64,000 nucleotides of DNA from Diplonema japonicum (lineage: Eukaryota > Protista > Euglenozoa: Diplonemea), in the NCBI GenBank assembly GCA_964019335.1, contig OZ025648.1, positions 620,001 through 684,000 on the forward strand, in the 5' to 3' direction. How positions within the stretch are numbered: position 1 is the first letter of the stretch; each line of letters begins with the position of its first letter. A model generated the notes under the pieces. That model made no database searches. It saw nothing but the letters and a program-made list of their open reading frames with translations, and had not been told where the DNA came from. The position numbers and the translations under genes were made by a program. Shown here in pieces: positions 10,389-54,100 of the stretch.

Positions 10389-13138
10389 TCAGGCCACCTT
10401 CGGTTTGTTGATTTTAATTAGCTTGTGATACCTTGTGTGGTGTTCTGTGTGAGAAGGAGCGGATTTCAGCACATCTTGGCACCTAAAGAATTGGTTACAA
10501 CTGTTACAAACAACAAACCTGCGAATGTACTGTCACCTTGCCCCTCTTATGGGGCGTTCTGGATCTTTGCCTTGGAACCTTAGCGAATACTGATGGTGGT
10601 TCGATTCGGGTTGAAGGCAACCCAGCCTTAACTTGAGGTACATCTTCTTCGTTCTGGTCTTGCTCTTCACTGGCCTGCCTTTCCTCCTCTTTTTCCTTGG
10701 GCTGTGATGGTAGAGCATCTCTATTGATAGCTATAGGAGTGGCCTGTGGCTGTTGTGCCCTGCTCTCACTGTCCTCCCTCAGTGGCTGCGACGCTGGTGT
10801 CGGCAGCACTTCAACTGGCGGTGTTGCATCTAAGGAAGGTGGCGATGGCTCTGCAGCTGGCTGTGCTTTCGGTGCAGTTAAGACTCCTGTTTTCCCTGGG
10901 CTTCCCATCTTCGACCTCATAGGGCTTGCAACACGCGTCTTTTTAGAATAGTCTCCTCCATGCAGGTCGGTCACAGCATGAAGTCTCCTGACACTGTCGA
11001 TGTGCTGGGGCGGAATAGCAGTTTCCTGTTGGTGGTTAAGAAAAAGAAAAGAGAAGAAAATTCACTATGATAGGAACGAAGTGGTTAGCAACGGCCCGCC
11101 AAAAAAAAAAAAAAAAACCCCTTAGAACCTTGGATTAAGAAAAAAGCATATTTTCACAGAACGATTTGGGAGGCTTTTTTGAGGGCTGAAAAACCAACAG
11201 CAGGTTTTTGATGAAATACAGGCCGACAAGGTCGAAACTGGCGAGGTGCACACGGGAAAGCTGTTAAAGGCGGGTGCACCCACTCAAGAAAAGTTCCTCT
11301 AAAAAAAACGACTGAAAGTTTAGTCCTGAAAATTTTCCTTCCGGGATTTTATTTTATCCTATGTGGCTTCAATGTCATAGCTTCTGCACTTGCTGTACAA
11401 CGCAAATGGCAACCCACATTATTAACCCAATTTTTTTTTACAGCACAGAAGGCCTCCGGACATGACAGAGCTTCCAGCCATTTGTATCTCTATGTTTTTC
11501 ACCACATAAGAAAAGAGCGAGAAAGAAAAAGCAATTGCATACTATCCTTACAGGGTCAACGAAGCCTCCACCAAAGGGCAGTGTAGCACTGTGATGAGAA
11601 CTTTTCCAGTCAACATCGTGTACCCTAACTCCGCACGACTTGTCACCTTTCCTGTCACTTTCATAATACCCACTTTGGGGCGGATTAGGATTTCCCACAG
11701 CGGCCGCCTTGGGAGCTACACGCAGCCCCACAATGGTGCTGTGCCTCGGGGAAACAACAGGATCGCTATGAGCAACTTGAGCAGGATAACCCCTTCTTCG
11801 CCCTCTTACCTCGGCAAGGTCAGCCTTTGTGTTGACAGTTGTTGCCCCCAGATGGTCGGTCCGCCATGCTGCTGAGTACTTAACTGACTCGTAACGTTTT
11901 TCCTTTGGTTCCTGCTTCGGTACCACCTTCAGAGAACGAGAGGGGGGGGTACTGTTAGTGGCTGGCTCTGGTGCCCTGCGCCCTGATTTAACTACTTTCT
12001 GAGTCGTTTCGTTCCCTGCCACTGGATTCTCGCGGAATGTCTTCAGCCCCTTCGGGATGGGAGAGTGGAACGTGGACGGTGTGGCTTCAGGACACGAGGA
12101 AGTCTTGTATGTCACCGGCTGCGAACAGGATCTGTTTTTGGCATCAAGCGATTGGTTGTATGTTCTTTTAGTTGGCTTCTCTCCAACAGTACCGCGCCCA
12201 AGGTGTGTGGCCCAGTTGTATTGTGTCGTTGTTGTGGCGTTGGGATTACAAGACAGGGGGGAACCCGGTCTCAGAGGAGATCTCCTCGACAGATGAGGAC
12301 CTTTTTTCGGCGCTTCGACTTGAAAAGGCCTGGGATGGTCAACAGGCACAAACTTGCTTGCAGATTTTGATCTCTTCTTAGTGGGGGAGTTCATTTCATT
12401 GTGGCTTCGAATAGATGCACCACGCACACTTTCATTCTCTCGGTGAAGGGCAAGAAGGCGCCAGTACACTTCGATACGTGCACACTCTATAGGGTCTTTT
12501 ACGTTGTAGTGTTTCAACAATCCTTTCAGTGTTTCAAGAGACACAAGAGTTAGCTCGCTGGGAGAGAACGTGTCAGATGCAACTCTTATGAAGTTGTTCC
12601 AAGCTTGCTTGGCTACGTTCGATGTGTTGGACAACGCAATACTTGAGGGCACAGGGTTGGTCGGTTGGGTGTGCTCTACACCCATAGGCATCGCTGGCGA
12701 CATCATAGACTTGTGGGTCCTCATAGGAGACTGCTCCTGGCTAGGTGCAGGGTACGGATAGGGCATGGGTGACGGCTGTGGCATGGGCTGTGGCTCGACG
12801 GCATGTTCAATGGTGCCCATGCCGGGTGACGTCAGCGGGCGGTACTTCGTCACCCTTCCAGGAGCTTCCTCTCTCTCGACTTCAGTCTTCAAATCGATGT
12901 TCCTGTTCTGCACTAGAGAAAGTGTGTTCCTACTCTGCTGCAGCGTTGCCTCCATGTCGGCCAACCACTGATCCCTTCCATGCCTCAGGTCGTCGTTCAC
13001 CTTCCTCTCGTCTTCTAACTGTTGCCGAACATTCTCCAATTCTATCTCCATCTCGACTTGTTTGGACTCGTAGCCCCCATCCATGTAACTATACGGCGTG
13101 TCGTACCCCTCCTTCACAGGCGACTCTATGCCCACCAT
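10389..13138 (-). CDS. Hypothetical Pro/Ser-rich, largely disordered protein with N-terminal coiled coil (4 exons)
   Basis: ORFs 11438-13138 and 10504-10974 join in phase 0 through a 517-nt intron 11026-11542 (GTATGC...AACAG); further introns 10483-10518 (36 nt) and 10398-10431 (34 nt); ends RTPHK|VA-TGA. Confidence 0.65.
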
Positions 13139-27519: not shown

Positions 27520-30306
27520 TTACAACTTGTCATAGAAGTTGTCCAGACCCGGGATCTCAGGCTTAAGACCCTTCCTCACACGGGTCTTGGTGACAAGGTC
27601 GGAGGCAAGGTTACCAGGCTCAAGCGGGTTACCAGGGAACGAGGCCCAGTGGTCAAACACGCACTGCGGGAACGCCTGTGATTATGGGTACCATTGTTTC
27701 ACCAAAACATACCTGACCACCAGTGTGGGACCTGAGGTCGGCGGTGAACCCGAATGACTCAGAGACAGGGAGGTAGGCACGGACCTAATGAAGTTCGTTG
27801 GTGTATAAGTTGCATACGTTGTAGATAGGTGTTCCGGGCCTGTTCTCCTCACCAAGCATGATACCTCTCCTCTTGTTGAGGACACCGTAGATACCACCCA
27901 TGGCGTGCTCGACGGTCTGGATGTCCACCAAGAAGATGGGTTCCATAAGACCGGGCTTAGCGGTCAGGCAGCACGCGTAGTAGTTACGACGAGCAGTGGG
28001 GATGACCTGACCACCACCTCTGTGGATAGCATCAGCGTGCATGGTCATGTCCTCGATGTTGATCCTGATACCACGCATGGTCTCCTCGCACATCACACCC
28101 TCCTTGGTGGCCCAGTTCCAGGCAGCCACGAAGGAGTCCTTCACCTCGTTCATGTTCTGCACACCCTTGGTGACGTCAACAACCATGTTGGGACCAGCAC
28201 CGTCGGGACCGAAGCACCAGATCTTCCTGGCCTCAGCGACGTCCCACTCGAACTCGTCGGCGAGCACACGGGCCCTGATCTTGACATCAGCCTCAGCGTG
28301 GACGTTCTTGTCCTTGTCGTCAATGTGCAGGCACAGCTCGTCACCGAGGGGAGCACCCCTGGCGAAGATCCTGTTGTGCTTGTTGGGCGACTTCGACAGG
28401 CACTGACGGTCAGACGTATCGGTGATGGTCTCACGGAACGACACAACGGGCTCAGAGATCTTCAACTTGGCACCTGCCATGTAGTCTTCCTGAAGATCCT
28501 TCAGGCAAATCTCCAAGTGAAGCTCACCAGCACCGGCGATGATGTGCTCACCCGACTCCTCGATGGAGCACTGCACAAGAGGGTCGGACCTTTTGAGGTG
28601 TACTACACTACATTTCTTAAACATACTTAGAAAGACGCTTAAGACCCTCAACCAGCTTGGGCAGGTCAGCGGGCGACGCACACTCAACGGCCACACGAAC
28701 GACGGGCGACACACTGTACTTCATGTCACGGAGCGGGTAGCAATCAGAGCAGTTCTCGTCAGTGATGGTGGCGGTCTTCACAATGAAGTTGTCAACACCT
28801 ATTGTGGTCATCATATTGTATTCTGAGGTGTTTTCATACCGACAAGACCAACAACGTTACCGCAGGGAATGTCCTCAACAGCCTCCTGGTAACGACCCAT
28901 CATGAGCACGGTACGCTGGATGTTCTTGATGGACATGTCCTTCTTGGTGCCGTACTCGTAGTTGGGCCCCATGATCCTGGCCTTCTGACCCTGCCTCACC
29001 TTACCAGAGAACACACGACCGAAGGCAATGAACCTACCCTTGTCAGCCGCGGGAACCATCTTGGAGATGTACATGAGAAGGGGACCAGCGGGGTCGCAGT
29101 TCTTCAGCCCCTGGAAGTACTTGTCGTTGTTGGGGAGAAGGGTACCATCCTCTTGCTCGGTCACACCCATGTACAGCTGGTCAGCCCTGTAGGCCTGAGC
29201 CTGCTTCGGCGAGGGAAGCTTGGTGACAATCATCTGAAGAAGAGCGTCCGAGGCGGGCAGGAACTTCTGCATGATGCACTTCAGAAGCCTCTTCTGAGTG
29301 AGGTCCTTCTCGTCACCCTTGAGGGTGATGTTAAGGGCCTTCATCATCTTCTCCATCTTGTCCTTCTTCTCGTTCATGACGGCGTCGAACAAGTTCTTGA
29401 TCGGCTCCATGCAGAACTGGCAGAAGGCCCTCTGGCCACCCGGAACGGGCTCCGAGGTCCACTTCTTCCTCTTCCCGTCGAAGTAGGAGTCACCCCACAA
29501 CCTCTTCACCATCTTGTCCTCGTCAATCCCGAACTTTACCGCGTACATCTTGGCGAACTTGTTCAAGGTGAAGGCCCACGAGTGGAGACCGGACCCGAAC
29601 CCGACGGTTCCGGCCTCAGGGTACACCTGCACGTCACCCAGGTGCTCGTCGTTGTAGGTGGCGATGACGACGTTCACAGTCTGGATGGTCCTGAAGAACG
29701 ACTGGTAAGCCTCCTCGGGGTCAAGTTGGAGCTCAAGGAGCGCACGGTCGACCTTGTTGACCATGACGACAGGCTTGATCCTCTCAGAGAGGGCCTGACG
29801 GAGCACAGTCTCGGTCTGGACGCACACACCCTCAACGCAGTCGACGACGACAAGGGCACCGTCGGTCACACGGAGGGCGGCGGTCACCTCAGAGGAGAAG
29901 TCAACGTGCCCCGGGGAGTCGATCAGGTTGATCAGGAAGTCCCTCTTGTCGCCGCCGGTGAGGGCCTTCAGCTGCTCGTTGTTCACAAGCCTCTCCTCGA
30001 CGTTGTAGTACAGCGAGATGGAGGTCGACTTGATGGTGATGCAACGCTCCTGTTTGTGTGTTGTGTGTGTGCTGGTTTGATACCTGCTCGTCAGCACGAG
30101 TGTCGGTCAGACGGGCGTCACCAGCCTTCGCCATGGCAATGATACCAGCGGCAGCAACAAGGGAGTCAGTCAGAGTCGACTTGCCGTGATCGACGTGAGC
30201 AATCACAGACCTGCAGTGCATGTGGTCTTGGTGTTACATACATGTTACGGATCTGCGTGGGGTATTCCATGATAGCACGGACCTCACTGACGGTAAAGTT
30301 CACCAT
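27520..30306 (-). CDS. EEF2: Translation elongation factor 2 (7 exons, 857 aa)
   Basis: MVNFT...[49 protein letters not shown], diphthamide loop [11 protein letters not shown]; introns 30211-30241, 30050-30083, 28799-28839, 28590-28626, 27785-27817, 27676-27712; spliced length 2574 nt. Confidence 0.98.
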
Positions 30307-30861: not shown

Positions 30862-31480
30862 CAGTGATGGGTGAATCCGGTCCGGTCCGGTGTACCCAAT
30901 TTACCGGACTGACCGGATCGGCCGGACTGACCGGACTGACCGGACTCGAAAATTTTCTGCAAACCTGCAAACACTTTTTTTTCAAATATTTTTAGACAAT
31001 GATTTTTTTTTCCTTTTTTTTTTTTTTTCTTTTTTTTCTTCTTCTTCTTCTTTGTACCACAGACATGCACAGCTCCATCAAGCCATTTGCACCTATCTAC
31101 TCCAGTGCACTGCAGCTGCAGGTATGTACATATGTCCGGAAATGTTGTATTTGGATGTAACCCGGCTGTGGTGATCGACGTGGAACGCAGAAGAAGCTAC
31201 AACCCGGCCGCGGTGAGAGATATATGAGTTAAAGGACCTGCACAAGACTACTTGATTACAGGGGTACACCACAGCCGAGATGTAGCTTCTTCTGCGTTCC
31301 GCGTCGTGTCCTTAATGTGTGCGGTGTTCAGCTCAACCCCAGCCGGGGCGTCCCGGGTAACCAGATTCTGCTCGTGCAGGGGTGGGTCGTTCCATTCCCT
31401 TCCGCCAAACTGAAAAGTCGGAGCTTGGCGGAACGGCGGAACCAGCGGAACCGGAACTTGGCGGAACAGGGAATTCCTTA

Positions 31481-31512
<32 letters not shown>

Positions 31513-33256
31513 CCTATTGTCCTTAATCACCGCAGCCGGGTTGTAGCTTCTTCTGCGTTCTGCGTCGTGTCCTTAATGTGTGCAGTGTTCAGTTCAACCC
31601 CAGCCAGGGCGTCCCAGGTAACCAAGATTCTGCTCATGCAGGGGTGGGTCGTTTTGTTCCCTTCTGCCAAACTGAAAAGTCGGAACGTGGTGGAACGGCG
31701 GAACCGGAACTTGGCAGACAGGGAATCCTAACCTATTTTTTTTTTTTTTTTTTTTTCCTCTTTGCATCATCAAGGTTGAAAGTGGTGACTATATCACCAC
31801 AACACTGACAGCACAATATTCCGTGTCGTGTCCTTAATGTGTGCAGTGTGCAGCTCAACACCAGAGCATCTGCAATACGTTCCTCCACTTGGGCGCTACC
31901 AGTGATGACCGACGTGGAGGTCAACAGTGAACAACACATCTGATGTACTTCTTATATTTCCATATTTCTGTAATCCCCACCAAATAACATGAAAGAGGTA
32001 AAGGAGACCAGTGACAGGGGGTGCACCTCGGCCGCTTCTGCGTTCCGCGTCGTGTCCTTAATGCATGCAGTGTGCAGCTCAACCCCAGCTGGTGCCCTAA
32101 GTAGTTTACTCACCCTGAGCATCTGCAATTTGTTCTTCCACTCAGGGTGCTACAGGTGATGACCGGCCAAGTGGATGGAGGAAAATGCCTGTTCATCATG
32201 TTCGTGGCGCCCACACAAGAACTGTTAACTTGATACAGGGGGGCACTGCAGCCAAGTTGTAGCTTCTTCTGTGTTCTGCATTGTGTCCTTAATGTGTGCA
32301 GTGTGCAGCTTAACCCCAGCCAGAGCAACACAACCCAGGGTAACCAACATTCTGTGCTCATGCAGTTTGCTGCCAATTCATCACCCTGAGCATCTGCATT
32401 ATGTTCTCCCACTTGGGTGCTACTGGTGATGACATGGAGGTCAACAGCAAACAACACATCTGATGTACTTCTTATATTTCCATGTTATCCCCACCACCTG
32501 AATGATATATATATGAGTTAAAAGAGGCTGGTGTTGGTGGTGCCCTGCACAAGAACTGTCTACTTGATTACAGGGGGGGCACTGCAACCGAGTTGTAGCT
32601 TCTTTTGCATTCCGTGTCATGTCTTTAATGTGTGTGGTGTACAGCTCAACCCCAGCCAGAGTGTCCCTACTTGATTACAGGGGGTGCACCACAGCTGGGT
32701 TGTAGCTTCTTCTGCATTCTGCATCATGTCCTTAATCACCACAGCCGAGTTGTAGCTTCTTCTGTGTTCCATGTCATGTCCTTAATGTGTGTGGTGTTCA
32801 GCTCAACCCTAGCCGGGGCACCCTGGGTAACCAAGACTTCTGCACTCATGCAGTTTGCTTGGTGATGACCGATGAGGAGGTCAACAGCAAACACATCTGA
32901 TGTTTTTCTTATATTTTCATGTTATCCCCACCACCTGAAAAAGAAGATTAAGGTTTTTTTTTTTTTTTCTTTTTTTTTTTTCTTCGTTTCTCGTTGTTGT
33001 TGTTGTTGTTGTCTCTCAGTACCTGTGTAACATCTTTTCTTGTAGACATCTGTTTATACATTTGAACTCTGCAGCAAAAAAAAAAGGGAGGATGTGGTGT
33101 TGTGGTTGTATCTTGTCTGGTCCGGTTCAGTCCAGTCCAGTCCAGTCCAGTCTGGTCAGTCCAGTCAGTCTGGCATAATTGGGTCGAAATTCACACCGGA
33201 TCCAGTCTGGTCTGGTCCAGTCCAGTCTAGTCCTAATTAGGATTCACCCATCACTG
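30862..33256. mobile_element. hAT-like non-autonomous element with 17-bp TIR CAGTGATGGGTGAATCC and (A)CCGGACT-type subterminal repeats
   Basis: TIR at 30862-30878 and its reverse complement at 33240-33256; a third end at 36586; no clean 8-bp TSD (catgac is present on both flanks). Confidence 0.55.
31150..32937 (+). repeat. Scrambled array of fragments of a ~270-bp dispersed repeat
   Basis: At least seven copies of agcttcttctgcgttccgcgtcgtgtccttaatg and three of gtgatgac...gaggtcaacag...acacatctgatgt; full-length copy at 39019-39290. Confidence 0.85.
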
Positions 33257-33504
33257 TCATGACAGCACCAGCTCTGTGATGCTGTGGAGCTCACTAAGTC
33301 ATTGTTAAGTAAGGAACTGGTGGAACATGATGGAACATGGTGGAACCAGTGGAACATGGTGGAACTGGCAGAACTTGGCAGAACAGGGAATTCCTTACCT
33401 ATTTTTTTTTTTTTTTTCTTTGCCCCCTTTTTTCCTCTTTGCATCATCAAGGTTGAAAGTGGTGACTATATCACCACAACACTGACAGCACAATACAGTG
33501 TTGG

Positions 33505-33653
33505 CCACTGAGGCCATTCCCTCCATTCCCCCATTCCCTCCAGGGGAACAGAGGGAAGGGAACAATTCCCTCAAGGGAATTTGGGGGAACAGGGGAATGA
33601 AAAGGAACAGGGGAACCAAGGGAATGGGGGAATGGAGGGAATGGCCTCAGTGG
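33505..33653. mobile_element. 149-bp MITE with perfect 35-bp TIRs
   Basis: 33505-33539 ccactgaggccattccctccattcccccattccct is the exact reverse complement of 33619-33653. Confidence 0.75.
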
Positions 33654-34889
33654 TGAAAAAAAATTTTTTTTTTCTGGGGCCACATGGCACTTGGGCACCC
33701 TCAAAATAGAGATTTTTTTATTTTTTGGAAAAAAATTTTTTTTCCCCTCTGGTAGAGCCCTTACCAAGGCTGATTTTGCTGTTTTTTTACCCAAAAATAC
33801 CCCTTAATAAATTGGCCAAAAACTATGAAAATAGGTAGATTTAACCTTTTTAACCTTTCTGCAGTACCTAGAAAAAAAGGGGGGGGTACCAATTTAACTA
33901 GTTATTAATGAGATTTTTGGAGTTGAAGTAAAAATGGGTCTCATTGTCGAAAAAATGTACCCAACCCCTTCAATTTTTTTTTTAGAGATGGGGTATTTTG
34001 ACTGTAGCCATCTGAGGCCATTCCAGCCCTTAAAAGTGGGAATAAGTGATTTACTTCCCCTTAAAATGCCACACTGAAATAGCTATCCCATATTACCTTG
34101 GGGAAATCCCCAACAAAGCTGGCACACCACATGCAATTTTTTTTTTAAATAAACCTCTTTTTTTTTGGCTGGCCAAGCCCTCTCCTTTCTTTTTCTCCCT
34201 CCCTGGCCTTGGGTAGGGGTGGGTGGGGCCTGGGTGGGTGAAAGTGAAGAGGAGTGAAGGAGGGTACACAAGTCTATCCTGGCTTGCTTTTCTTTAATGG
34301 ATGCTTTGCACTTTTGGGTAGGGGGTGAGCAACTCATACCACACATTTGCAGGGTCTTTATCTACAAGTTTTGCCTTGTTTTTCTTTTTTTTTTTCTTTC
34401 TTTTTTCTTCTTTTTTTTTCCTTTTTTTTTCCTTCTGGGGTTGTTGGTAAAACGTGGGTAATATTTGGGTATTGTTAAATAAGGTTGCTGCTCACTGTTT
34501 CTTTTCTCTTTCTTTTCTTTTATTTTTTCTCTTCATGGCACTCTTCTTATTTCACTTGTTCTCTTTTTTTCCTCTTCTTATTTTTCTGGGGGTAAACAAG
34601 TTGGGTTGTTTGGGTAAATGGGATTAGATAAGGCTGCTGCTCATAAACTTTTTTTTCTTCCTCTTTCTTCTCTTCATGGTGCTCTTCTTATCCGTATTTA
34701 TATTCCTACACTTATTCTCTATTTTTCTTTTCCCTTTTCTCATTTGTCCTGTTCAATAATTATTTCAATTCTCACACTATTTCCTTTCTTTTTGTTCTCC
34801 ATTCCTGTTTTTTTTTTCTCTTTTTTTTCTTTACTATTCTATTTACTTCTACTGCTGGTCCTGTGTGATCATCTCTTTGATTGAACTGA

Positions 34890-35970
34890 AGAGGTCTGTG
34901 GTCTGCTGTGGTTTTTTGAGGAGTGCCTCTGCAAGGCCTTTGGCTTCTTGTCAGCTTCTGGTAGGCTGTCTGCTTGTCCAGCTCTGCATCAATTGCCTGC
35001 AAGTGCCTTCATGACTGCTGTGTGTCATTGGAAGCATTCGATCATGAATATGAAGTGTGCCCTGAAGTTCATCTTCTCATTGAATTTCACCCCAAGGAAC
35101 ACTGGCTCTTCTTGGTACATTACCATTGTTTGCTGCCCTGCTGCATCCTTGTGGTACACAACTGGTCTGTGTTCTGTCTTTTTATTTGGCCCTGATGCCA
35201 TCATCCACTTCTTCCATACTGTTTCCACTTGCCACCACAGCCATGTTGTCTGCAAACAGTGATGTAATCAGTCCTGTGTCCACACCCACTTTATGCAATC
35301 TTGTTGCTATGTCATCCACATAGCAGATAAAAAGCAGTGGGGAGAGGACCATCCCTTGTGGAACTCCTTCTTCTTTTTCATAGAAGTCACCTTGTTCCCC
35401 ACCTACCTCTACAGCTGCCTCTCAATCCTTCAGGAACTCTGCAATCCAGTTTATGTATTTTGCAGGGAACTGCAGCTTCCTCATCTGTTCCAGAAGGCAG
35501 TGCTTCACAACTGTGTCAAAGTCAAAGAAGAGTGAGACAGTGACACAGTTCACATCCTTGTTGTCTCTGATGGTCTGTGCCAGGAGGGCAATCTGCTCAA
35601 GGGTGCTTCAGCCAGTCTGAAATCCTGCTTGAATGTGGCAGATGCTTGGTGTTGTCAGGTCATTGCTGTCCAGGAGGAAAGCGATTCTCATCTTGATAAT
35701 CCTTTCTATAAGCTTGCAGAGGTTGCTTGTGAGGTTGATGGGGTGGTAGCTCCCCTTTTCCATTGGGTCCTTTGTTGGCTTCTGGAGCAGCTTCATTAGT
35801 GCCTTGTGCCACTTTGGTAGGATGGTTGTGCTGTTCCATGAGAGGTTAATTGTGTGGAGGAGGGCTGCTCTGGCCATTGGCCCTAATTGCAGCAGCATCT
35901 TGTTGTGGATGAGGTTGATTCCAGGGCTTTTGTGCATCTTTAGTTGTGACATTGCATGTGCCAACTCATG
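34890..35970 (-). pseudogene. Non-LTR retrotransposon reverse-transcriptase remnant (clade not resolved)
   Basis: KSPGINLIHNKML, KGSYHPINLTSNLCKLIERII, QAGFQTG*STLEQI, GVPQGMVLSPLLFICYVDDI, LFADNMAV, FLGVKFNEKMNF. Confidence 0.9.
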
Positions 35971-36585
35971 TTTTTTTCTTTTTCTTTTTTTGCCCTTTTT
36001 GAACACCCAATTTTGTCCTAAAAATGGAATTCTGAACAGCCAATGGAAAGTTTTAACCCCACTTGGACTGAAAATTTTTTTTCAAAAATCACTGTAGGAA
36101 TTTTCCTTAGGGTCTAAATGGCCACCTGAAAATCACAAAATCAAGCTTCATTTTAGAAGGTAATTTTGGAATTTTGGCCTAATTTTGGCAAAATTCCCCT
36201 TGAAGTAGGTTTCCCAGCTGTGGTTACCTGATCGAATTTTTTTTTTCCTTCAAGGAATCAACTTTCTTCTGAAAATTTAAGATTCATATCATTCTACCAC
36301 CTTATAACTCACTTTTCAGGAAACACACAATTTCACACATTTGAATTTATTCTTTAGTTTTTTTCTGAACCTATTTAATTTTTAAACCTAATAAAGAAAG
36401 TGTAAATCTCCTAATCAAGATTTTTTAGTCCCAGTGTTGCCAAAATGGGTTGAAAATTAAAGTACCCAGCTGTGGTTACTTAATCAAGAATTTAATAGCC
36501 CATTTAACCTATGTATTCAAACCTTTTACCCTTACTTGGTTTTGTGGAATTTATTTCATTCTTTTGGTTCCTTGCCCACCAATAG

Positions 36586-37058
36586 CAGTGATGGGTGAAT
36601 CCTAATTAGGACTAGACTGGACTGGACTGGACCAGACCAGATCCGGTGTGAATTTCGACCCAATTATGCCATGACCAGACTGACCAGACTGGACTGGACC
36701 AGACCAGACTGGACTGGACCAGACTGGACTGGACTGGACTGAACCAGACTGGACAAGATACAACCACAACACCACATCCCCCCCATTTTTTTTTGCTGCA
36801 GAGTTCAAATGTATAAACAGATGTCTACAAGAAAAGATGTTACACAGGTACTGAGAGACAACAACAACAACAACAACGAGAAACGAAGAAAAAAAAAAAA
36901 AGAAAAAAAAAAAAAACCTTAATCTTCTTTTTCAGGTGGTGGGGATAACATGAAAATATAAGAAAAACATCAGATGTGTTTGCTGTTGACCTCCTCATTG
37001 GTCATCACTGAGCAAACCGCATGAGTGCAGAAGTCTTGGTTTCCTGGGGGGCCCTGGC
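36586..37058 (-). repeat. Inverted duplicate (~450 bp) of 32812-33256
   Basis: Reverse-complement match including (CAA)n, poly-A and tgtataaacagatgtctacaagaaaagatgttacacaggtactgagagac. Confidence 0.9.
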
Positions 37059-38026
37059 CAGTGTTGTTATGAGAATGCCCCCCCCTGAGATTTTCAGGGG
37101 GGCATGGGGGCAATCTCCTTCACCTCCAGTGCTTGCCAACAATAGCAAAGTGTCAGTGGTGGCACCTTCTTCACCTCAATCCTGGGACCTTTCAACCCCA
37201 ATATTGCCAGCCATGCCCCCATTCCACCCAAGGTAGGCTATCAGGTAGTCTTTTCTGACAGATTTGCTGGTTCTATTGGGGTGTCTTGTTGGGTTAGGTT
37301 ATTTTTGAAAACAACCTGCCAATAAAGTACAGTAAAAACAGGGGGGGGGAAAAAATTATTTGGGCCCTTTTTTTTTGACCCATGACCATCTCACTTTCAC
37401 TATTAGCCTCATTAAGGTCTAGAAAAGGTATTTTTGAGGGAAAAAAATTTTTTTTTTGAGAAAAAATCAATTTAAGGGTGTTTTTGGCCACTTTTTTGGG
37501 AGGAAAAACAATTTTTTGGACACTATTTTTTTTTTTTTTTATCCAGCACCCCATGCACCCAATAAAGTACAGTAAAAAAAAGGGGGGTAAATACAAAGAA
37601 TGAGAAGGGTAAGTCATAAAGGAGAGAAAACCAACAGATAGACCATTATTAGGCCTGATATAGGTACCCTTTTAGAAAAAAATCAATTTTTCTGAGGTAA
37701 AAAACCACTTTTCAGGTGTTTTTGACCACTTGTTCATGTGAGAAATAATTTTTTTTGGGCACCTCTTTTTTTGACCCCCAAACATCTCACTTTCACCCCA
37801 CTTCACTAAAAGCCTCTATTAAGGCCTAGGATAGGTACTTTTGAGAAAAAAAAATTTGGAAAAAAAATTAATTTTTGGGTGTCTTTGACAACTTTTTTTG
37901 GGTGGAAAAATTTTTTTTTTGGACACTATAAAAAAAATTTTTTTTTGCCCCCCTGCCCCCCTGGATTTGCCCCCCCGTGCCCCCCTGAAAATCTCAGGGG
38001 GGCAACCCATTCTCGTAACAACACTG
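37059..38026. mobile_element. ~970-bp hAT-like non-autonomous element
   Basis: Left end cagtgttgttatgagaatg..ccccctgagattttcagggg; right end reverse complement cagtgttgttacgagaatg..ccccctgagattttcagggg; internal direct repeats (caataaagtacagtaaaaa at 37320 and 37560). Confidence 0.7.
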
Positions 38027-38149
38027 GTTGAGTATTTTTGTAATTTGGTTACTATTCTTTCTCGTTTTTCAAGTCTGGGAAGGCTATCAAGAACATCCTC
38101 ATACTCATCACAAGATTCATAGACTGGGGGCCTTTTCTCTGCCTGTCTG

Positions 38150-38720
38150 CAGTGAGTTCTTTGATGATGTACTTTAGTTCTTTCTAGCTCATGGATGCAC
38201 ATGTAGCAAATACACCCTCTGGTGTGCTCCTGAGCTCATATGCACCTGTAAAATCTGGAAACTCAAGAATTTTCTTTTTGTATGGGCCAAAGACATCAGT
38301 AACTACATGCATGGCACACCAAAGTGGCTGTCCCTGACACCATATTGTATTGGTGATGTTAGCTATTTGTTCCACAGTTTTAATTGTTGTGGAATGAGGC
38401 ACCCAAAACCAAACATGAGAGAGCACACCAAAGTGGCTGTCCCTGTTGTTTTTGCCGTGTTTCTCCCCCAGAAACCACCAGGGAAAACGTCTGATTGGGA
38501 TATACATAATGAAGACCAAAAAGAACAAAGTAGCAAAATTCCTTTGCATGAAAGTGATGCCCACCATCAGTCCAGAGTATCCACTCCATTTTTTTCTTTA
38601 TTTTTTTCTGTACCCATGCTACTGTGGAACAAGACTTTTCTAACAGTAAGGCCAGCTGCCCTTATTTCATCATGTGTGATGTGGCCAAGCCTAGGAAAAG
38701 AAACATGCAAGAGTGACACG
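38150..38720 (-). pseudogene. Degraded transposase-like fragment (possibly Sola-type)
   Basis: Frameshifted WILWTDGGHHF..EF and GEKHGKNNRDSHFG, a DG...HGKxxxD spacing seen in some DDD transposases. Confidence 0.4.
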
Positions 38721-39018
38721 GGGGTAGGGAACAAGCCCTCCAAGCCAATCCCAAAGCATGGAATAACCCTACACTGCAGATCCAAGCTTGAGTACCACCC
38801 AACATCAACACTTAGGCACTGCCAAGGCAGACCAGGTGTTGCTCACTCCTTTAATTGGAACCCCTCACAAGTGTAAAAAAAAAAAAAAAAAACACATCAC
38901 CCTCCACCTACCTCCCTCTATCATTTGCGTTTATCAGTGTTTTATGAGGAAAAGGGGAAAGAAAAAAGGAAAGGATAAAAAACCCACTTCTATTTTTTGG
39001 CAATGAAGCACGAACTAT

Positions 39019-39290
39019 CTACTTGATTACAGGGGGCGCTCCTCGGCCAAGCAGTAGCTTCTTCTGCGTTCCGCATCGTGTCCTTAATGCGTGCGGTGTG
39101 CTCAACCCTAGCCGGTGCGTCCCAGGTAACCAAGATTCTGCGCTCATGCGGTTTACTGCCAGTTCGTCACCCTGAGCATCTGCGTTACGTTCTTCCACTC
39201 GGGCGCTACCGGTGATGACCGACGAGGAGGTCAACAGCGAACAACACATCTGATGTACTTCTTTATATTTCCATGTTATCCCCACCACCT
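39019..39290 (+). repeat. Full-length, CpG-retaining copy of the ~270-bp repeat
   Basis: Contains in order all modules found scrambled at 31250-32937; lies directly upstream of the pyrimidine tract of the first plus-strand gene. Confidence 0.85.
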
Positions 39291-39404: not shown

Positions 39405-40946
39405 ATGAAGGTGTTGTGTTTAGCGCTGGGCCTTGCAGCTGTACAGGGTGCCGTCTTCCCCAAGCCTTCTGTGTACGAAGAATCCGGCAGTTTTGCGAAA
39501 CTAGGTTCTGGGTTCAGCTTTGGTGAGAGCGCAGCAGAGCTGGCAAGTGACCGTCTGCTGAGGAGCGCGGGTAGGTACGATGGCTTCGTCGCGTTGAAGA
39601 CTGATCTGAGCCGCAGGGAGAGTGAGATGAAAGTGTCCTTCGACGTTGCTAGTTATGATGAAGAGTTGTCAGCAGAGACCGACTACTCGTACGAGGTGGT
39701 GATGGAGAGTGGTAAGGTTCTTATCAAGTCCCGCAGCGTCTATGGTGCCATGTATGCAATGGAAAGTATTACGCAACTTATCACCGAGGATGGCACCCTA
39801 TCGCTTGTGTACATCAAGGATGCACCCAAGTTCAACTGGAGAGGGCTCATGGTCGACTCGGGCAGGAGGTTCTTCCCAGTGCCGACAATCGAGAACCTTC
39901 TCGACACCATGTCTTATGTCAAAATGAACGTGCTGCACCTTCACGCTTCGGATCTGTGCAGATTTGGTGTGGAAAGCAAGAAATTCCCAAACTTGACAAA
40001 CTCGCTCACGGGTACCATGGCGGGCTTCTTCACACAGGAAGACATTGCTGGCATCGTCAAGTATGCCGGCGATAGGGGTATCAGAGTGGTGCCCGAGTTC
40101 GATGTTCCCGGGCACTCGAGGGGGTTCCTTCCACTTGAAAGCCAGGGCATGGAGTTCTGCACAACGGGCTCCGAGAAAGATCAGCTCTACAACGACCCTA
40201 AAAACAGCACCTACAACATTCTGACAGAGATCTTCACAGAAATGTCTGCCCTTTTCCCGGATAAGGTTTTCAACATCGGCAGCGACGAGACAGCCGCCAA
40301 GGGCAGGTGTACAGTGCAGTCGACCTTTGAGATTGAGAGGGCTTTGGTGACATTTGTAAAAGAGAAGCTTGGTAAGACCCCTGCTGGCTGGGAGGAGATC
40401 CAGTTCGATGCTGGCGCCGCTACACAGGACACTATCGTCGATGCCTGGGCACGTCACTCTCCTGGATCGATCACCGCGACAGGAAGGAACGCTATTGCCT
40501 CCAACGACTCGCACTTCTATTTCACCGAGGCGGCACCCGGAGGCCCTGCTGGGTGGTCCAAATGTTGGCATGATATCAGTTCTACTGTCCCTGCCTCCCA
40601 GCAAAATCTTCTCTTGGGTGGTGAGATCTCCATGTGGACAGACACTTACTGTTACATCGAGGAATGCCTCAACCCCAGCGCAGGCAAGCCTGTAGGCCAC
40701 ATCCTGTTTGACCCCAAGTACGACCAGCAGTTCGGGTACTCCATCGGTGGTATGATCTGGCCCCGTGGGTACGTTGCCGCCGCTGCCTTCTGGAACTTCA
40801 ACAGCAGCACCGATCCTACGTCTGCTACTTTCACTCAGAACATCTGGAACATGAATACCGAGTTCCAGAAGAGAGGTTCTTGGGTTTGCCCCACGAACTG
40901 CTCTTGCGATCAGTTGACTTCATGTGGTAAGCCGTATGTGCAGTAA
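39405..40946 (+). CDS. Beta-N-acetylhexosaminidase (GH20) with signal peptide
   Basis: MKVLCLALGLAAVQGA; IKDAPKFNWRGLMVDSGRRF, KMNVLHLH, RGIRVVPEFDVPGH, catalytic GSDE, LGGEISMWTD, IWPR. Confidence 0.95.
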   Translation: MKVLCLALGLAAVQGAVFPKPSVYEESGSFAKLGSGFSFGESAAELASDRLLRSAGRYDGFVALKTDLSRRESEMKVSFDVASYDEELSAETDYSYEVVMESGKVLIKSRSVYGAMYAMESITQLITEDGTLSLVYIKDAPKFNWRGLMVDSGRRFFPVPTIENLLDTMSYVKMNVLHLHASDLCRFGVESKKFPNLTNSLTGTMAGFFTQEDIAGIVKYAGDRGIRVVPEFDVPGHSRGFLPLESQGMEFCTTGSEKDQLYNDPKNSTYNILTEIFTEMSALFPDKVFNIGSDETAAKGRCTVQSTFEIERALVTFVKEKLGKTPAGWEEIQFDAGAATQDTIVDAWARHSPGSITATGRNAIASNDSHFYFTEAAPGGPAGWSKCWHDISSTVPASQQNLLLGGEISMWTDTYCYIEECLNPSAGKPVGHILFDPKYDQQFGYSIGGMIWPRGYVAAAAFWNFNSSTDPTSATFTQNIWNMNTEFQKRGSWVCPTNCSCDQLTSCGKPYVQ

Positions 40947-48739: not shown

Positions 48740-50514
48740 CCCATAACACTCCAAGGCGCAAATATTTGTCGTTTTGAAAAATCGTTTTTTTCTCTAAGTA
48801 CTTTTTCGTCCCCACGACCCCTGGATCTCCAAGAACGACTATAGTGAGGAGTTATTTTCAACTGCAATTCATGTTGCACTGCATCACTTTACCTTGTTAT
48901 CCACCCACCAAGTGGGTCCCAAATCCGAGTGGATAGGCGAAAAAACGCAAAATAACGGGTGTGCAGACTGTGTCCAAAAAACGCAAAGGTAAAGCCAAAA
49001 CAGCTACGGACGAGGTCCAACCTTCATGGGTACCAACTCCATAGAGACCATAAAATAGGCCGGTGGGGGGGAAAAAAGCTGTCCCGTGGTACGCAGAAAC
49101 CTGACGACGCAAAATGATTATTCCTTCGGTTTTTTGATAAGAAGTTCACAGACGTCATCCAAGAAGAGACAAACAAGCAAAAGGACGCTGAGATTGATAA
49201 GATTTCAACCCAGGACTCCACCGCTTTCTCGGATTGAGCATTATAATGGGTTTGCGGCGTGCCCAGAATTAGCAAACGTATTGGTCCACAGGACCCATGA
49301 AAATCCCCCTTTTCAGTAACACGAAGCCCAGGAGACGCTACCAGGAAATTAAAAGTAGCCTCCACTTCACTCACACAGAAGAGTCAAACGGTGATGTGTT
49401 GTGGAAGACACGAGGGTTTCTGGACAGAATTGGTAACAAGTGGGCAAAAACAGCAGTGCCAGGAAAATATTTAAGCATTGACGAGACACTCGTACCGTCA
49501 CGGGGCAATTGGGGGGGCTTGGGGTCTACTGTCCTCTCAAGCGTAAGAGAGATGGCATAAAAATATACTGCCTAAACTGCGTGAGCACGGGTTATCTTTC
49601 GCGTTTTCACATCCACGCCACCAAAATCGAGGGGCACGCACTTGAAGATTTCAGTGTCGTGGAAAAGGTGGTGCTGGGGTTAACGGGGAATTTTCGGGGA
49701 ACGACAACACGGTAGTTTGCAATAACTACTTTTCGACTGTGGGTCTGGCCGAAGCCCTGTGAAAAAACTGTGAGGGGGCTTGCATTTCGTTGGAGTGTTG
49801 CGGACTCTTCTGGTGGGCCCTAGAAGTGACAATAGTTAACTGCCTTGCACTTTAAATAAAATATGGTTAGGGTTCAGCCAAAGAGATACAAAACCCTGGC
49901 TGCTTTTAAAGAGCGCTTTCGAGAGAGCCTAAATGATGGGTCCAGCGTTGCAAAAACACCACTCCCGGCACCCAACTAGTGGAGCACACACACCCGACAC
50001 CCCAGATTACACCAAACGTGACCACCAACCACTCAAAGGGGGCAACTCCAGGTTCTGCAGGTTGAAAGGATGACACAAAACGCACAATCTACAAATGCTA
50101 CACCTGTAACCAACACCTCTGTCCAAATAAGTGCTTTTTTCGTACCACTCTTCCATCACCCCAAAAAGGCTTCTTGACGATTTCGAGGCCGATATTCCAC
50201 CCGCAAATAGGCACTTCTCTCGGTCTGAGACATCTGAGGGGTCCTGATGCTGCTTTTTTTGTCCCAAGATGCTCAATTTACACCCCCCCGTGCACAACCC
50301 ATTTTGACATGGTCGTTTTTGAGCACCCTACGGCCATTCAACTCTTCATCCCCTTTGTATTTTTATTAATTTTTGAGCTTTTTTTTAATTTTTCCTGGTC
50401 CAAAAAACCCGTTTTACCTGCAAACGGGGGTTAAATGCTGCCATTTTCCCCGTCAAATTATGAAAAGGAGCAAAAAAGGGACCCCTATGTAGATAGGCCC
50501 CGGAGTGTTATGGG
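48740..50514 (+). mobile_element. piggyBac element (1775 bp) with perfect 13-bp TIRs, TTAA target-site duplications and a degraded transposase
   Basis: TTAA|CCCATAACACTCC at 48736-48752 and GGAGTGTTATGGG|TTAA at 50502-50518; fragments RRRYQEIKSSLHF, PGKYLSIDETLVPSRG, YCPLKRKRDGIKIYCL..STGYL. Confidence 0.92.
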
Positions 50515-51156: not shown

Positions 51157-54100
51157 AAAAAAAAACAGTGGACACGAGGATGCAGTCTGGGATTTAACCA
51201 ATCGACGAGTAACGTCAGTATCAGTAGCAGCAAAGGGAGCGTACGGCGAAAGGCATCCCACTCGGCAGTAACCCCTACATTGCACACGGAGCTAGATGGA
51301 TCGATCAGGTGCCCGTTGAGATCCCCCCATTCCACCCTCAGAGAGCTTTATGGAGAGCCCTTCATCAACAAGACTCCACCACCTTCCTTAGCACCACCAC
51401 CACCACCAGCGCCGCCTCTTGTCAAAACTACATCGAAGGTCCCCACCTTTGCTTTGTGACCGATGTACAAGAAATCACTCCATATGAAGATGAATAACAA
51501 GCAACCAAAAAAATAAAATAAAAAGAAAATAACATAAAAAAAAAGTCCCCCCCCCCTTCCGGGCCACAGGTCCAGTTATTTATGTGATATAAGACATTGG
51601 TTTGCCATTCCCCCCCCCTTTTTTTTTTGGAAGTACAATAAAAAAGAAGGAAGAAAAAGAGGAAAATGTAATACTAAAATAAAAAAAAAATAAAAAAAAT
51701 CCTCGTGGAAAAAGAAATTTAGTAATAGTTCAGTTTCGGAATTTCGGTCTTTTTTTTTCCCCCTTTTTTTTTTACACCCGAATTCTGTCCCCCCCATCCC
51801 TCCCCCCTCTTTTTGCTCAAAGGATCTTTTTTTAAAAAAAAATGAGAGAAGCTTCCAACTGCAGCTCCAGCTACCCACTTTACTTGCTACATCGGAGTTA
51901 CCCTTTCGGACGTATGTCCCTTTACAAAGAGCCCCTTCTTTTTGATGCGATGGCTGCAAGCAAAAAAAGAAAAAAAGAAAAAAAGAAAAAGAAAAAGCCC
52001 ATACCCGTAAAGAGTAGGACAAAATACAACTTTTTTTTGACATGACTCTTGACTATGTCCGCATCCATGCAGGATAGAAAAAAAAAAATGAAATATACAG
52101 GAGGGATGGTAACTTTTTTTGTTGTAAAGGAGTGGAAGAAAAGAGAGAGAAAAAAAAAGAGAAAAGGGAAGAGGCGAAAAAACTTTTTTTATGCTGAATG
52201 TGAAACCTAATCAAATAGGATTCGAACATATTTTTTTTCTTCCCTTTTATTCCCCCCCTCCCCTAAGTCTTCTAATTTATTACGCCCTACGGTAATAAGC
52301 AGATTTTTGTTATTCCATTGCTCCCCTCCCACCTTAATTTTCTTCTCTTATTTTGCTCCGAATCTTTTTTTATTGAGGGGGGGGGGGAGGGGCGAATTGT
52401 TTTAGCTCACAGTTTAGCCCAAATGTTAAATTTTAATCCTATTTTTTAATTAGGCGGGCCGTTGCTAACCACTTCGTTCCTATCATAGTGAATTTCTTTT
52501 TTTGTCTCCCGGTTTAATACAAGTATTGTGGTTTTTTTGTTCTTTTCGGCTAGTCATTTGAAAACGACCAGATTTATTTACCGAGAAAAACCTCAACTTG
52601 AAAAAAAAAAAAGAATGTGATTTCTAGGCTACGGTCTTCCTTCCCTCCTAGTTCCTGTGCAGTAGTTACGTAGTGCCAAGATGTTGTCCCTTCGCTGCAG
52701 GCTAATTCCGTTTTCTCTGTTTCTTATTTTACTTTCTTCTCCCCTTTAACATTTCTTATTCGTGAAATGCGAAACCGGGTTTTTATGCGAAACCGAGTTT
52801 GAAAAAAAAAAAAAAAAAAAAAAAGAAAGAAACCTACCGGCAACCAATCCACCAATCCTGACCACAACGACGCTTGTGTGATTGAAGTGAATAAAATGAG
52901 AATACTGGAGATTTTGTCAAACCGAGCTATTCGGTTTTTCTTGAAGGCCACTGGAGAAGCTTTTTGTTCAAGAGCGTCCTTTTCGTCGATTGTAAAAAAA
53001 ACAAAATCCCTTATCCCGCTTGAAACAAGGGAGAGGGGAAAATTGTTTTGGCAAAGCTATCCCTCTTTTTTTCATTCTCCCTTTTTTTTTTCCCTTCTTT
53101 TTTTTGTTACTGAAGTGTGAGTTTTTGTATTGTTGTTTTTCTTTTTTCTTTTTTTGGCCAATCTTGTTGCGTGTATCGATGGGGCAAAGAATATAAAAAA
53201 AAACCCCAAAAAGAGAATGTGTTGTGTCTTTTCGAACATATCTGCGCTTCTTCTTCGCTGTTCCTGGGGAAGGGGGGGGGGTTAAAAACAAATTTTTAGA
53301 GCGATGATTTTCTTCCTTTTTTTTTTCTCCAACACTTTCTTGGAAATGAAATGCGGCCGAGAACAGTATCCGGGAGGGGAAAAAAAAAAAGAGATATAAA
53401 TAGGTTAGAAAATAAATACACCTAATTCTTTTTTTTTTTTTTTTTTTTGGAGAAAAGAAGATGTCAGCAATTCTTTTTTACTTTTTTTATCTCAACGAAG
53501 GAGAATCGGCGGAGTGTTTCCTGCCACCGCCAATCCTACCTTTTCTTTCATTTCTTTTTACCGTATTCTATTTTTTTTTAAACTACCAAAAGGGAGAAAG
53601 ACGAAAAAGAAAAAAAAAGAGCTTTCGACATTGTGAATTGGAATCCCCCGCTGCAAAGAAATCTATCTAGTTACCCCCTCCTTTTTTCTAGACTCTCAAC
53701 ATCTACGGTCCATATCTCTGCTATTCGGAAAACTGGGGGCACCAGATATTTGTGATGATGTTGCGATTTCTTCTATTAGCCAGCACCATACCCAGCTTTC
53801 CATGCCGTCTTCTGAAACCCACTGTGGTCTCCTTCGAGCACCCCCCCCCCCCCCCCCCTCGGGCTTGGCTTTGACACTCCGTAGAAACTTGGGTCGCTAT
53901 TTTCTTTTTATTTTTTTTTCCCCCTCTTTATCCCTTCTCTCTTTTTTCTCTCTTTTTTCCCTCCCCCACACAAAGGGGTCCACAAAATAAATTCGAAAAA
54001 AAAAGAAACAGAAACAGAAGAACCCCCCCCCCCCCCCCCCCCCCCCCCCCTTATGGCCATCACCGTTTGCCATTGGCGCTTCAGAAATTGTAAATACTCG

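Follow-up and report, generated by a model that had tools for sequence, protein, structure and literature searches.

A CpG-decayed, gene-free repeat island at a divergent strand switch of Diplonema japonicum, probably shaped by cytosine methylation

In the fungus Cryptococcus neoformans, 5-methylcytosine (5mC) at the centromeres and in the subtelomeric regions is reportedly maintained by the methyltransferase DNMT5. Among the Euglenozoa, strand switches that carry degenerate retroelements house the centromeres of Trypanosoma cruzi and Trypanosoma brucei; each Leishmania chromosome has one switch at which the main replication origin coincides with the KKT1 site; and the kinetoplastid base J marks both the switches and the telomeres. 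To our knowledge, kinetoplastids do not have DNMT5. According to the accessible part of one report (PMC7463849), genomic 5mC is not detectable in Leishmania. Here, we describe an island of 6,795 bp (positions 32210–39004) in a 64,000-nucleotide stretch of the genome of the diplonemid Diplonema japonicum (hereinafter, the window), where approximately 88% of CG dinucleotides are gone, to TG or CA, and compare it with these systems.

The gene content of diplonemids has led to the prediction that their DNA is methylated (PMC10161547), and DNMT5 has been recorded among euglenozoans (PMC12344493); neither paper contains a methylation map, and no diplonemid methylation map or mutational footprint was found in the literature searched. 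The genome of D. japonicum YPF1604 was assembled from PacBio HiFi reads (62.30 Mb, 118 chromosomes; PMC13598402), and methylation, centromeres, and strand organization are not mentioned in this genome note. Contigs of the assembly used here (62.5 Mb, 132 contigs) are denoted C1, C2, etc., the window being C1:620001–684000, and coordinates without a contig label refer to the window. The sequence read for the chromosome survey was C1:420–684 kb (264 kb), which includes the window; the remaining 257 kb outside the island are referred to as the rest, and open reading frame (ORF)-free stretches within the same sequence served as the control.

The island contains 28 CpGs, compared with approximately 233 expected at the local background observed-to-expected ratio (o/e) of 0.79. 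Its CpG o/e is 0.095 vs. 0.79 across the rest, the GC content being 41.7%; by kilobase, from 32 to 39 kb, the values are 0.28, 0.09, 0.05, 0.04, 0.15, 0.05, and 0.14, and elsewhere in the window they range from 0.5 to 0.99. The island falls nine standard deviations below the mean of the 487 other 6.8-kb segments of C1:420–684 kb, whose minimum o/e is 0.60, and it is the only CpG desert at the 2-kb scale in these 264 kb, located at their sole strand switch. Among the 16 dinucleotides, CG alone is depleted (0.10 in the island, 0.79 in the rest, and 0.76 in the ORF-free controls), CA (1.36) and TG (1.26) are elevated, and TA is flat (0.52 vs. 0.53 in the rest). The signature is symmetric with respect to the strands, with 566 TG and 506 CA in the island.

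An earlier reading of the letters of this DNA (hereinafter, the sequence-only reading) had proposed a CpG-hypermutated domain here and suggested a profile of CpG o/e, TpG, and CpA along the chromosome, which over the 264 kb confirms the deficit together with the excess of TG and CA. Its counts were reproduced as well. A repeat motif with four CpGs has 4/4 at 31284, 3/4 at 31545, and 4/4 at 32035, then 0/4 at 32261, 1/4 at 32597, 0/4 at 32704, and 0/4 at 32754, and 3/4 again at 39056; the stretch 34981–35970 has two CpGs, at 35039 and 35682; and the repeat pairs gcggaac/gtggaac and accggact/accagact are present as claimed. The piggyBac-type remnants, said to keep their CpGs, are real (PF13843 at 1852–2286 and 49273–49557), with the surrounding CpG o/e of 0.73–0.79. 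One more candidate for decay, a mini-desert at C1:516.3–517.0 kb (516295–517042), was rejected, being a tandem array of a ~95-bp CpG-poor unit with a lone CCGG alternating with CTGG.

The loss is thus specific to CpG, proceeds from CG to TG or CA, and, as the sequence-only reading had held, is bound to position, with repeat family or age failing as the cause. The comparison relies mainly on family A, a repeat of ~287 bp with more than 1,300 candidate copies genome-wide, for which the copy at 39005–39290 was used as the reference; the 40 full-length matches that were scored are 92–97% identical to it. Copies inside the island keep five out of 58 reference CpGs (17 now read TG, and 22, CA), and copies outside keep 37 out of 75 (Fisher p 2.5e-7), non-CpG transitions and transversions being 7.2% and 6.7% inside, and 4.3% and 4.0% outside, respectively. 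In a pair matched by divergence, the inside copy at 32216–32499 (+ strand; non-CpG changes 3.8% and 3.4%) keeps none out of 21 CpGs, and the outside copy at 31248–31371 (3.9% and 4.9%), six out of nine; moreover, outside copies at ~7% non-CpG divergence keep 32–75% of their CpGs, compared with 0/21 in this inside copy. The two further family A copies or fragments of the island, at 32550–32667 and 32667–32936 (both on the + strand), keep one out of ten and three out of 20 reference CpGs, respectively, and the four-CpG motif is in the 0/4 state at C1:652267, 652710, and 652760. Similarly, for a repeat at 33930–34121 (+) with two other copies outside (C1:605086–605280 and 518564–518727), the three sites that are CpG in the outside copies have become TG, CA, and TG, respectively, in the island. 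In public sequencing runs, 15 out of 28 listed A>G or T>C alternates originating from other copies would restore a CpG, approximately 25% being expected by chance.

An inverted repeat within the island shows that the decay occurred in place. Its left arm (32804–33256, +) combines a second element with the family A tail and with a GTCCA/GTCTG microsatellite that arose from CCGGAC repeats; the right arm (36586–37066, −) matches it in blocks of 288 and 86 nt that are 95% complementary, and 3.3 kb lie between the arms. The arms mismatch at eight out of 427 non-CpG columns, i.e., are ~98% identical there. When the duplication occurred, however, 13 sites were CpG; 14 out of their 26 site-copies have changed since then, and at five sites one arm now has TG and the other CA. 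The rate of change is 54% per CpG site-copy vs. 0.94% at other sites, a 57-fold excess (83-fold when corrected for saturation; p 1.6e-18), and most differences between the arms are independent decays at the same CpG. Since the arms decayed after the duplication, the CpG loss acted on this DNA at its present place; it is recent, its timescale being comparable to that of the family A spread. Inverted repeats are seen in the island at three scales (32804–33256/36586–37066, 37058–37110/37972–38027, and 33505–33539/33619–33653).

The boundaries of the domain, described by the sequence-only reading as sharp, proved to be so in part. Dense CpGs end on the left with those at 32203 and 32208 and do not resume until 39011. 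On the left, a family A copy ending at 32174 keeps six out of 19 CpGs and the next one, from 32216, none out of 21, but this step is preceded by a shore of ~1 kb (31176–32209) composed of family A fragments, where 67, 33, 44, and 32% of reference CpGs are kept going rightwards. On the right, there is a step between 38928 and 39011, but it coincides with a young family A insertion, the reference copy itself (39005–39290, +), which has 21 CpGs, is 96–97% identical to dispersed copies, and agrees with the genome-wide majority at nearly all positions. The domain probably ends at this copy, because, given the decay rate of the arms, a similarly aged copy inside should have lost many CpGs; it is also possible that the copy is a very recent insertion into the domain.

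Islands of this type appear on other contigs as well. The CpG state was probed genome-wide with a 22-nt family A motif, in which the four CpG sites were written as YR (pyrimidine–purine), yielding 980 matches. On contigs C1–C9, 41 copies keep at most two out of four CpGs, and 40 of them are found in one cluster per contig, the exception being C4:110266. The clusters lie at 652.27–652.76 kb on C1, 54.7–59.2 kb on C2, 592.7–592.9 kb on C3, 648.5 kb on C4, 739.8–745.5 kb on C5, 824.2–829.5 kb on C6, 836.1–840.1 kb on C8, and 62.9–69.5 kb on C9, with none seen by the probe on C7. The 51 dispersed copies on the same contigs, each at a distance of over 10 kb from a cluster, retain 199 out of 204 CpGs (97.5%). 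Two narrower probes extended the series to 27 of the first 37 contigs and to many smaller ones, and no contig has two clusters.

Family A itself is young and abundant (at least 980 motif matches, 96–97% identity), and its intact copies are mostly on the + strand to the left and on the − strand to the right of islands, that is, antisense to genes. For the four-CpG motif, certain intermediate states of decay occur repeatedly at scattered loci: CA-CA-CG-CG is observed at C20:474671, C21:176337, C34:276495, C68:268301, and C75:28127, and CG-TG-CG-TG, at C15:170170, C15:522617, C25:157510, and C37:159613. These recurrent states suggest subfamilies that stem from source copies already short of CpGs, and such source copies possibly once resided in an island.

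The gene arrays are arranged around the islands in a regular way. In C1:420–684 kb, the 230 kb leftwards of the island have their ORFs on the minus strand, and the sequence rightwards of it, on the plus strand. To follow gene direction genome-wide, we used an orientation marker, a 42-nt non-coding motif with 375 copies at up to three mismatches and more than 100 exact ones, whose strand tracks gene direction almost without exception; it may be described as a strictly oriented repeat or signal inside gene arrays. In the window, it occurs at 11059–11100 (+) and 52453–52494 (−), and along C1 it is on the + strand at 631 kb and on the − strand at 672, 743, and 992 kb. The 113 listed exact copies on 66 contigs form 47 neighbor pairs, namely, 23 ++, 18 −−, five +−, and one −+, so that there is at most one switch per contig; none of 20,000 shuffles had so few switches. 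A cluster and markers are both present on 28 contigs, and all 56 markers of these contigs are + on the left and − on the right of the cluster, i.e., genes always point away from it. As each contig has at most one switch and at most one decayed cluster, and the two coincide, the choice posed by the sequence-only reading, between one CpG trough per chromosome and one at each divergent switch, comes out the same either way.

Several clusters lie 2–15 kb from contig starts (C19:4.9–14.9, C23:1.3–5.4, C27:13.6–14.3, C32:2.4, C35:7.5–9.3, and C78:4.4–5.8 kb); all listed markers on C19, C23, C27, C32, and C78 point away from the terminal cluster, and C35 has no listed marker. Chromosomes with a terminal island thus look as if they were one unidirectional array starting there. 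The only contig with a convergent marker order is C98 (56839, −, and 326894, +), which could be due to a real convergent switch, a marker inserted in reverse, or a scaffolding join. As at kinetoplastid strand switches, polycistronic arrays diverge here from a repeat-bearing gap, with one special locus per chromosome; unlike kinetoplastids, which have many switches per chromosome, D. japonicum has one switch per contig, and the latter bears a mutational scar of the 5mC type.

The genome encodes an enzyme that could account for such a scar. A search for CpG-type methyltransferases, which the sequence-only reading had suggested, showed that DNMT5 is present: it is one of five C5 methyltransferase (PF00145) loci, the others being one HhaI-like gene at C74:154656–155504, with an N-terminal extension of ~150 aa, and three DNMT2-like paralogs on C10, C36, and C11. 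None of the five loci is of the DNMT1, DNMT3, or RID/DNMT4 type. The DNMT5 ORF is 2,140 aa long, stop-free, and comprises the methyltransferase, SNF2, and Helicase_C domains; compared with the structure of C. neoformans DNMT5 (7R76), it yields E 2.5e-234, the methyltransferase domain being aligned throughout, with motifs I, IV, VI, and GNAMT in register (CSGTE, GT(S/V)C.D(F/Y)S, ENV, and GNAMTT).

Taking all this into account, we consider it likely that CpG methylation followed by deamination of 5mC, confined to one gene-free repeat nest between outward gene arrays, produced the island. CpG cytosines of the island would have been 5-methylated over evolutionary time, until recently, and spontaneous deamination of 5mC to T would have converted about nine in ten CpGs, leaving TG or, where the opposite strand was hit, CA. 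DNMT5, a CpG methyltransferase coupled to SNF2, is the likely enzyme; active transcription units on both sides would stay unmethylated, setting the edges, and the mark would spread onto newly inserted copies. Such spreading must be assumed because family A copies arrive unmethylated and then decay fully. We infer the role of 5mC as the cause, that of DNMT5 as the depositor, and the spreading onto insertions from these observations taken together. Methylation may silence the island, or, alternatively, lack of transcription may permit methylation. The chemistry, the TG/CA signature, and the large excess of CpG transitions would be the same as in methylated transposons of vertebrates and plants; unlike the latter, where the effect is genome- or transposon-wide, D. 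japonicum has one short domain per chromosome, and more than 95% of the genome has a CpG o/e of ~0.8.

Several considerations weigh against this explanation or some part of it. The island mark may be gone today. De novo activity would be needed to account for the decayed insertions, while DNMT5 of C. neoformans is strictly a maintenance enzyme. A six-frame screen of the genome yielded no match to SRA (PF02182, the UHRF1-type reader), which is no proof of absence, and none to Pre-SET (PF05033, H3K9 methyltransferases), where control genomes were also silent, so that the latter result has no weight. The sharpness of the right edge is partly due to the young family A insertion. The non-CpG C-to-T change is ~2.4-fold higher within the island, and thus a minor general deamination component there is possible. 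Finally, the probe sees copies of one repeat family only and is blind on ten of the first 37 contigs.

The same increase of non-CpG changes would fit an explanation without 5mC, in which a gap lacking polycistronic transcription either misses transcription-coupled repair or meets some other CpG-directed mutagen, and the island indeed coincides with the gap between two arrays. We nevertheless regard this as improbable, since deamination of unmethylated cytosine would proceed without the ~57-fold CpG preference seen in the arms, other long ORF-free stretches hold a CpG o/e of ~0.76 (though these are probably inside transcription units), and a dedicated CpG methylase is encoded. Still less can be said for an effect of age or family, that is, an old transposon graveyard or repeats that are CpG-poor everywhere, which seems very unlikely to us. 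The comparison at matched divergence contradicts it, with copies ranging from 0/21 to 6/9 CpGs kept; the arms have lost half of their CpGs at ~98% identity elsewhere, and dead piggyBac remnants and old dispersed copies outside the island keep theirs. It is true that the average non-CpG divergence is somewhat higher in inside copies (14% vs. 8% outside), and that some other copies of a LINE fragment described below have decayed too, with CA/TG alternates at the same sites.

Duplication-triggered C-to-T mutation by an RID-type enzyme, akin to fungal repeat-induced point mutation (RIP), had been entertained by the sequence-only reading as a genome-defense system. It is repeats that are hit here, with C-to-T and G-to-A transitions accumulating in them as in the repeated DNA of fungi; unlike fungal RIP, however, the decay in D. 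japonicum affects only CpG, is bound to position, and spares dispersed duplicates, as evidenced by the near-complete CpGs of the 51 family A copies on C1–C9 and the high identity of the 40 full-length matches to a near-consensus copy. The island shows no rise in TpA, and its RIP indices (TpA/ApT 0.73, (CpA+TpG)/(ApC+GpT) 1.45) are the opposite of those of RIP-mutated DNA; in addition, the PF00145 matches include no locus of the DNMT4/RID type. The RIP-like suggestion thus has to be abandoned with little reservation. An assembly or base-calling artefact at modified bases, a possibility named by the sequence-only reading, is hardly credible at all, and nothing in its favor emerged: the assembly is based on HiFi reads (PMC13598402), Logan contigs from three studies, compared over a stretch of 5,991 letters, show zero differences from it (X2 at 35569–35778, X4 at 37003–37109, and X6 at 35708–35853), and both the in-frame stops and the TG/CA alternates fit real divergence.

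The island is a gene-free nest of repeat fragments, with the first genes of the two diverging arrays on either side. It has no ORFs of 150 aa or longer except 38307–38876 (189 aa), which has no Pfam match; no tRNA was found in the island, and a search of it against Rfam produced sub-threshold matches only, taken as chance. Rightwards of the family A copies lies an element with GGAAC repeats (33300–33500, +), the decayed counterpart of the CpG-bearing copies at 31380–31500 and 31680–31820 (positions 33371–33495 align to 31707–31818 at 88.8%), followed by a MITE-like (miniature inverted-repeat transposable element) hairpin at 33505–33653 with perfect 35-nt arms 79 nt apart, for which only sub-threshold matches to miRNA models were obtained. 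A dead reverse transcriptase fragment of a retrotransposon without long terminal repeats (LINE-type, long interspersed nuclear element) occupies 34850–35960 on the − strand; it has the YVDD box and several in-frame stops, and its piece 35185–35421 matches RVT_1 (E 3.4e-9). An element of ~970 bp at 37058–38027 with terminal inverted repeats (TIRs) of ~53 nt has related copies on at least 40 contigs, and a further repeated element spans 38030–38930, where other copies carry a CpG-restoring C or G at ten out of 13 transition-variant sites listed for public runs. The island also contains a pyrimidine-rich and an AT-rich stretch. Other copies of the LINE fragment and of the TIR element are found at a small number of clustered sites, namely, decayed clusters (including C82:55–57 kb, C9:67 kb, C10:654 kb, and C17:81 kb) and contig ends.

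The left array starts with an EF-G/EF-2-like GTPase gene (27785–30097, −) in two ORFs, 27785–28714 and 28811–30097, separated by a gap of ~100 bp that could be an intron or a frame break. The first gene of the right array encodes a GH20 beta-hexosaminidase (39405–40946, +). Like kinetoplastids, D. japonicum is a euglenozoan with a Tet_JBP gene; it is a single gene (C20:468781–469245, in an 897-aa frame), located ~5–10 kb from island-type repeats at C20:474671–480380, which is probably a coincidence.

The likeness to C. neoformans goes beyond the enzyme. In both genomes, DNMT5 is the sole DNA-type CpG methylase, gene-free nests of dead retrotransposon fragments form one internal locus per chromosome, and element families are common to the islands (in C. 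neoformans, centromeres) and the chromosome ends. The differences are that the D. japonicum island is ~7 kb long, vs. tens of kb; that it is situated at the sole divergent switch of polycistronic arrays; that new insertions decay, and hence de novo spreading would be required, unlike with a maintenance-only enzyme; and that no UHRF1/SRA or Pre-SET gene was detected, the controls of the Pre-SET screen being silent as noted.

According to a recent preprint, diplonemids have no recognizable conventional or kinetoplastid kinetochore proteins, with the exception of a CENP-A candidate (10.1101/2024.08.06.606595), and a term search of this preprint and of two genome papers found no description of diplonemid centromere DNA. 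The most attractive function for the island is that of the centromere of the chromosome, a reading that is drawn from the occurrence of one island per chromosome, the sharing of transposon families, and the parallel in DNMT5, and that we put forward as possible, the odds being somewhat against it. More speculatively, the island may also be the main replication origin. By analogy with trypanosomatids, a strand switch of this kind could host both a centromere and an early origin. A broader scheme, equally tentative and in our opinion rather doubtful than probable, would assign to each chromosome one 5mC-marked island that serves as the CENP-A site and the sole point of divergence of transcription, perhaps also of replication, a terminal island then corresponding to a unidirectional array.

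With one patch per chromosome, these patches are candidates for diplonemid centromeres. A short, sequence-defined locus occurring once per chromosome at the sole switch provides concrete coordinates for mapping of the methylome, CENP-A, and origins, and, if DNMT5 has the role suggested by its sequence, would offer a very remote counterpart to Cryptococcus, as the second case of repeat islands marked by DNMT5.

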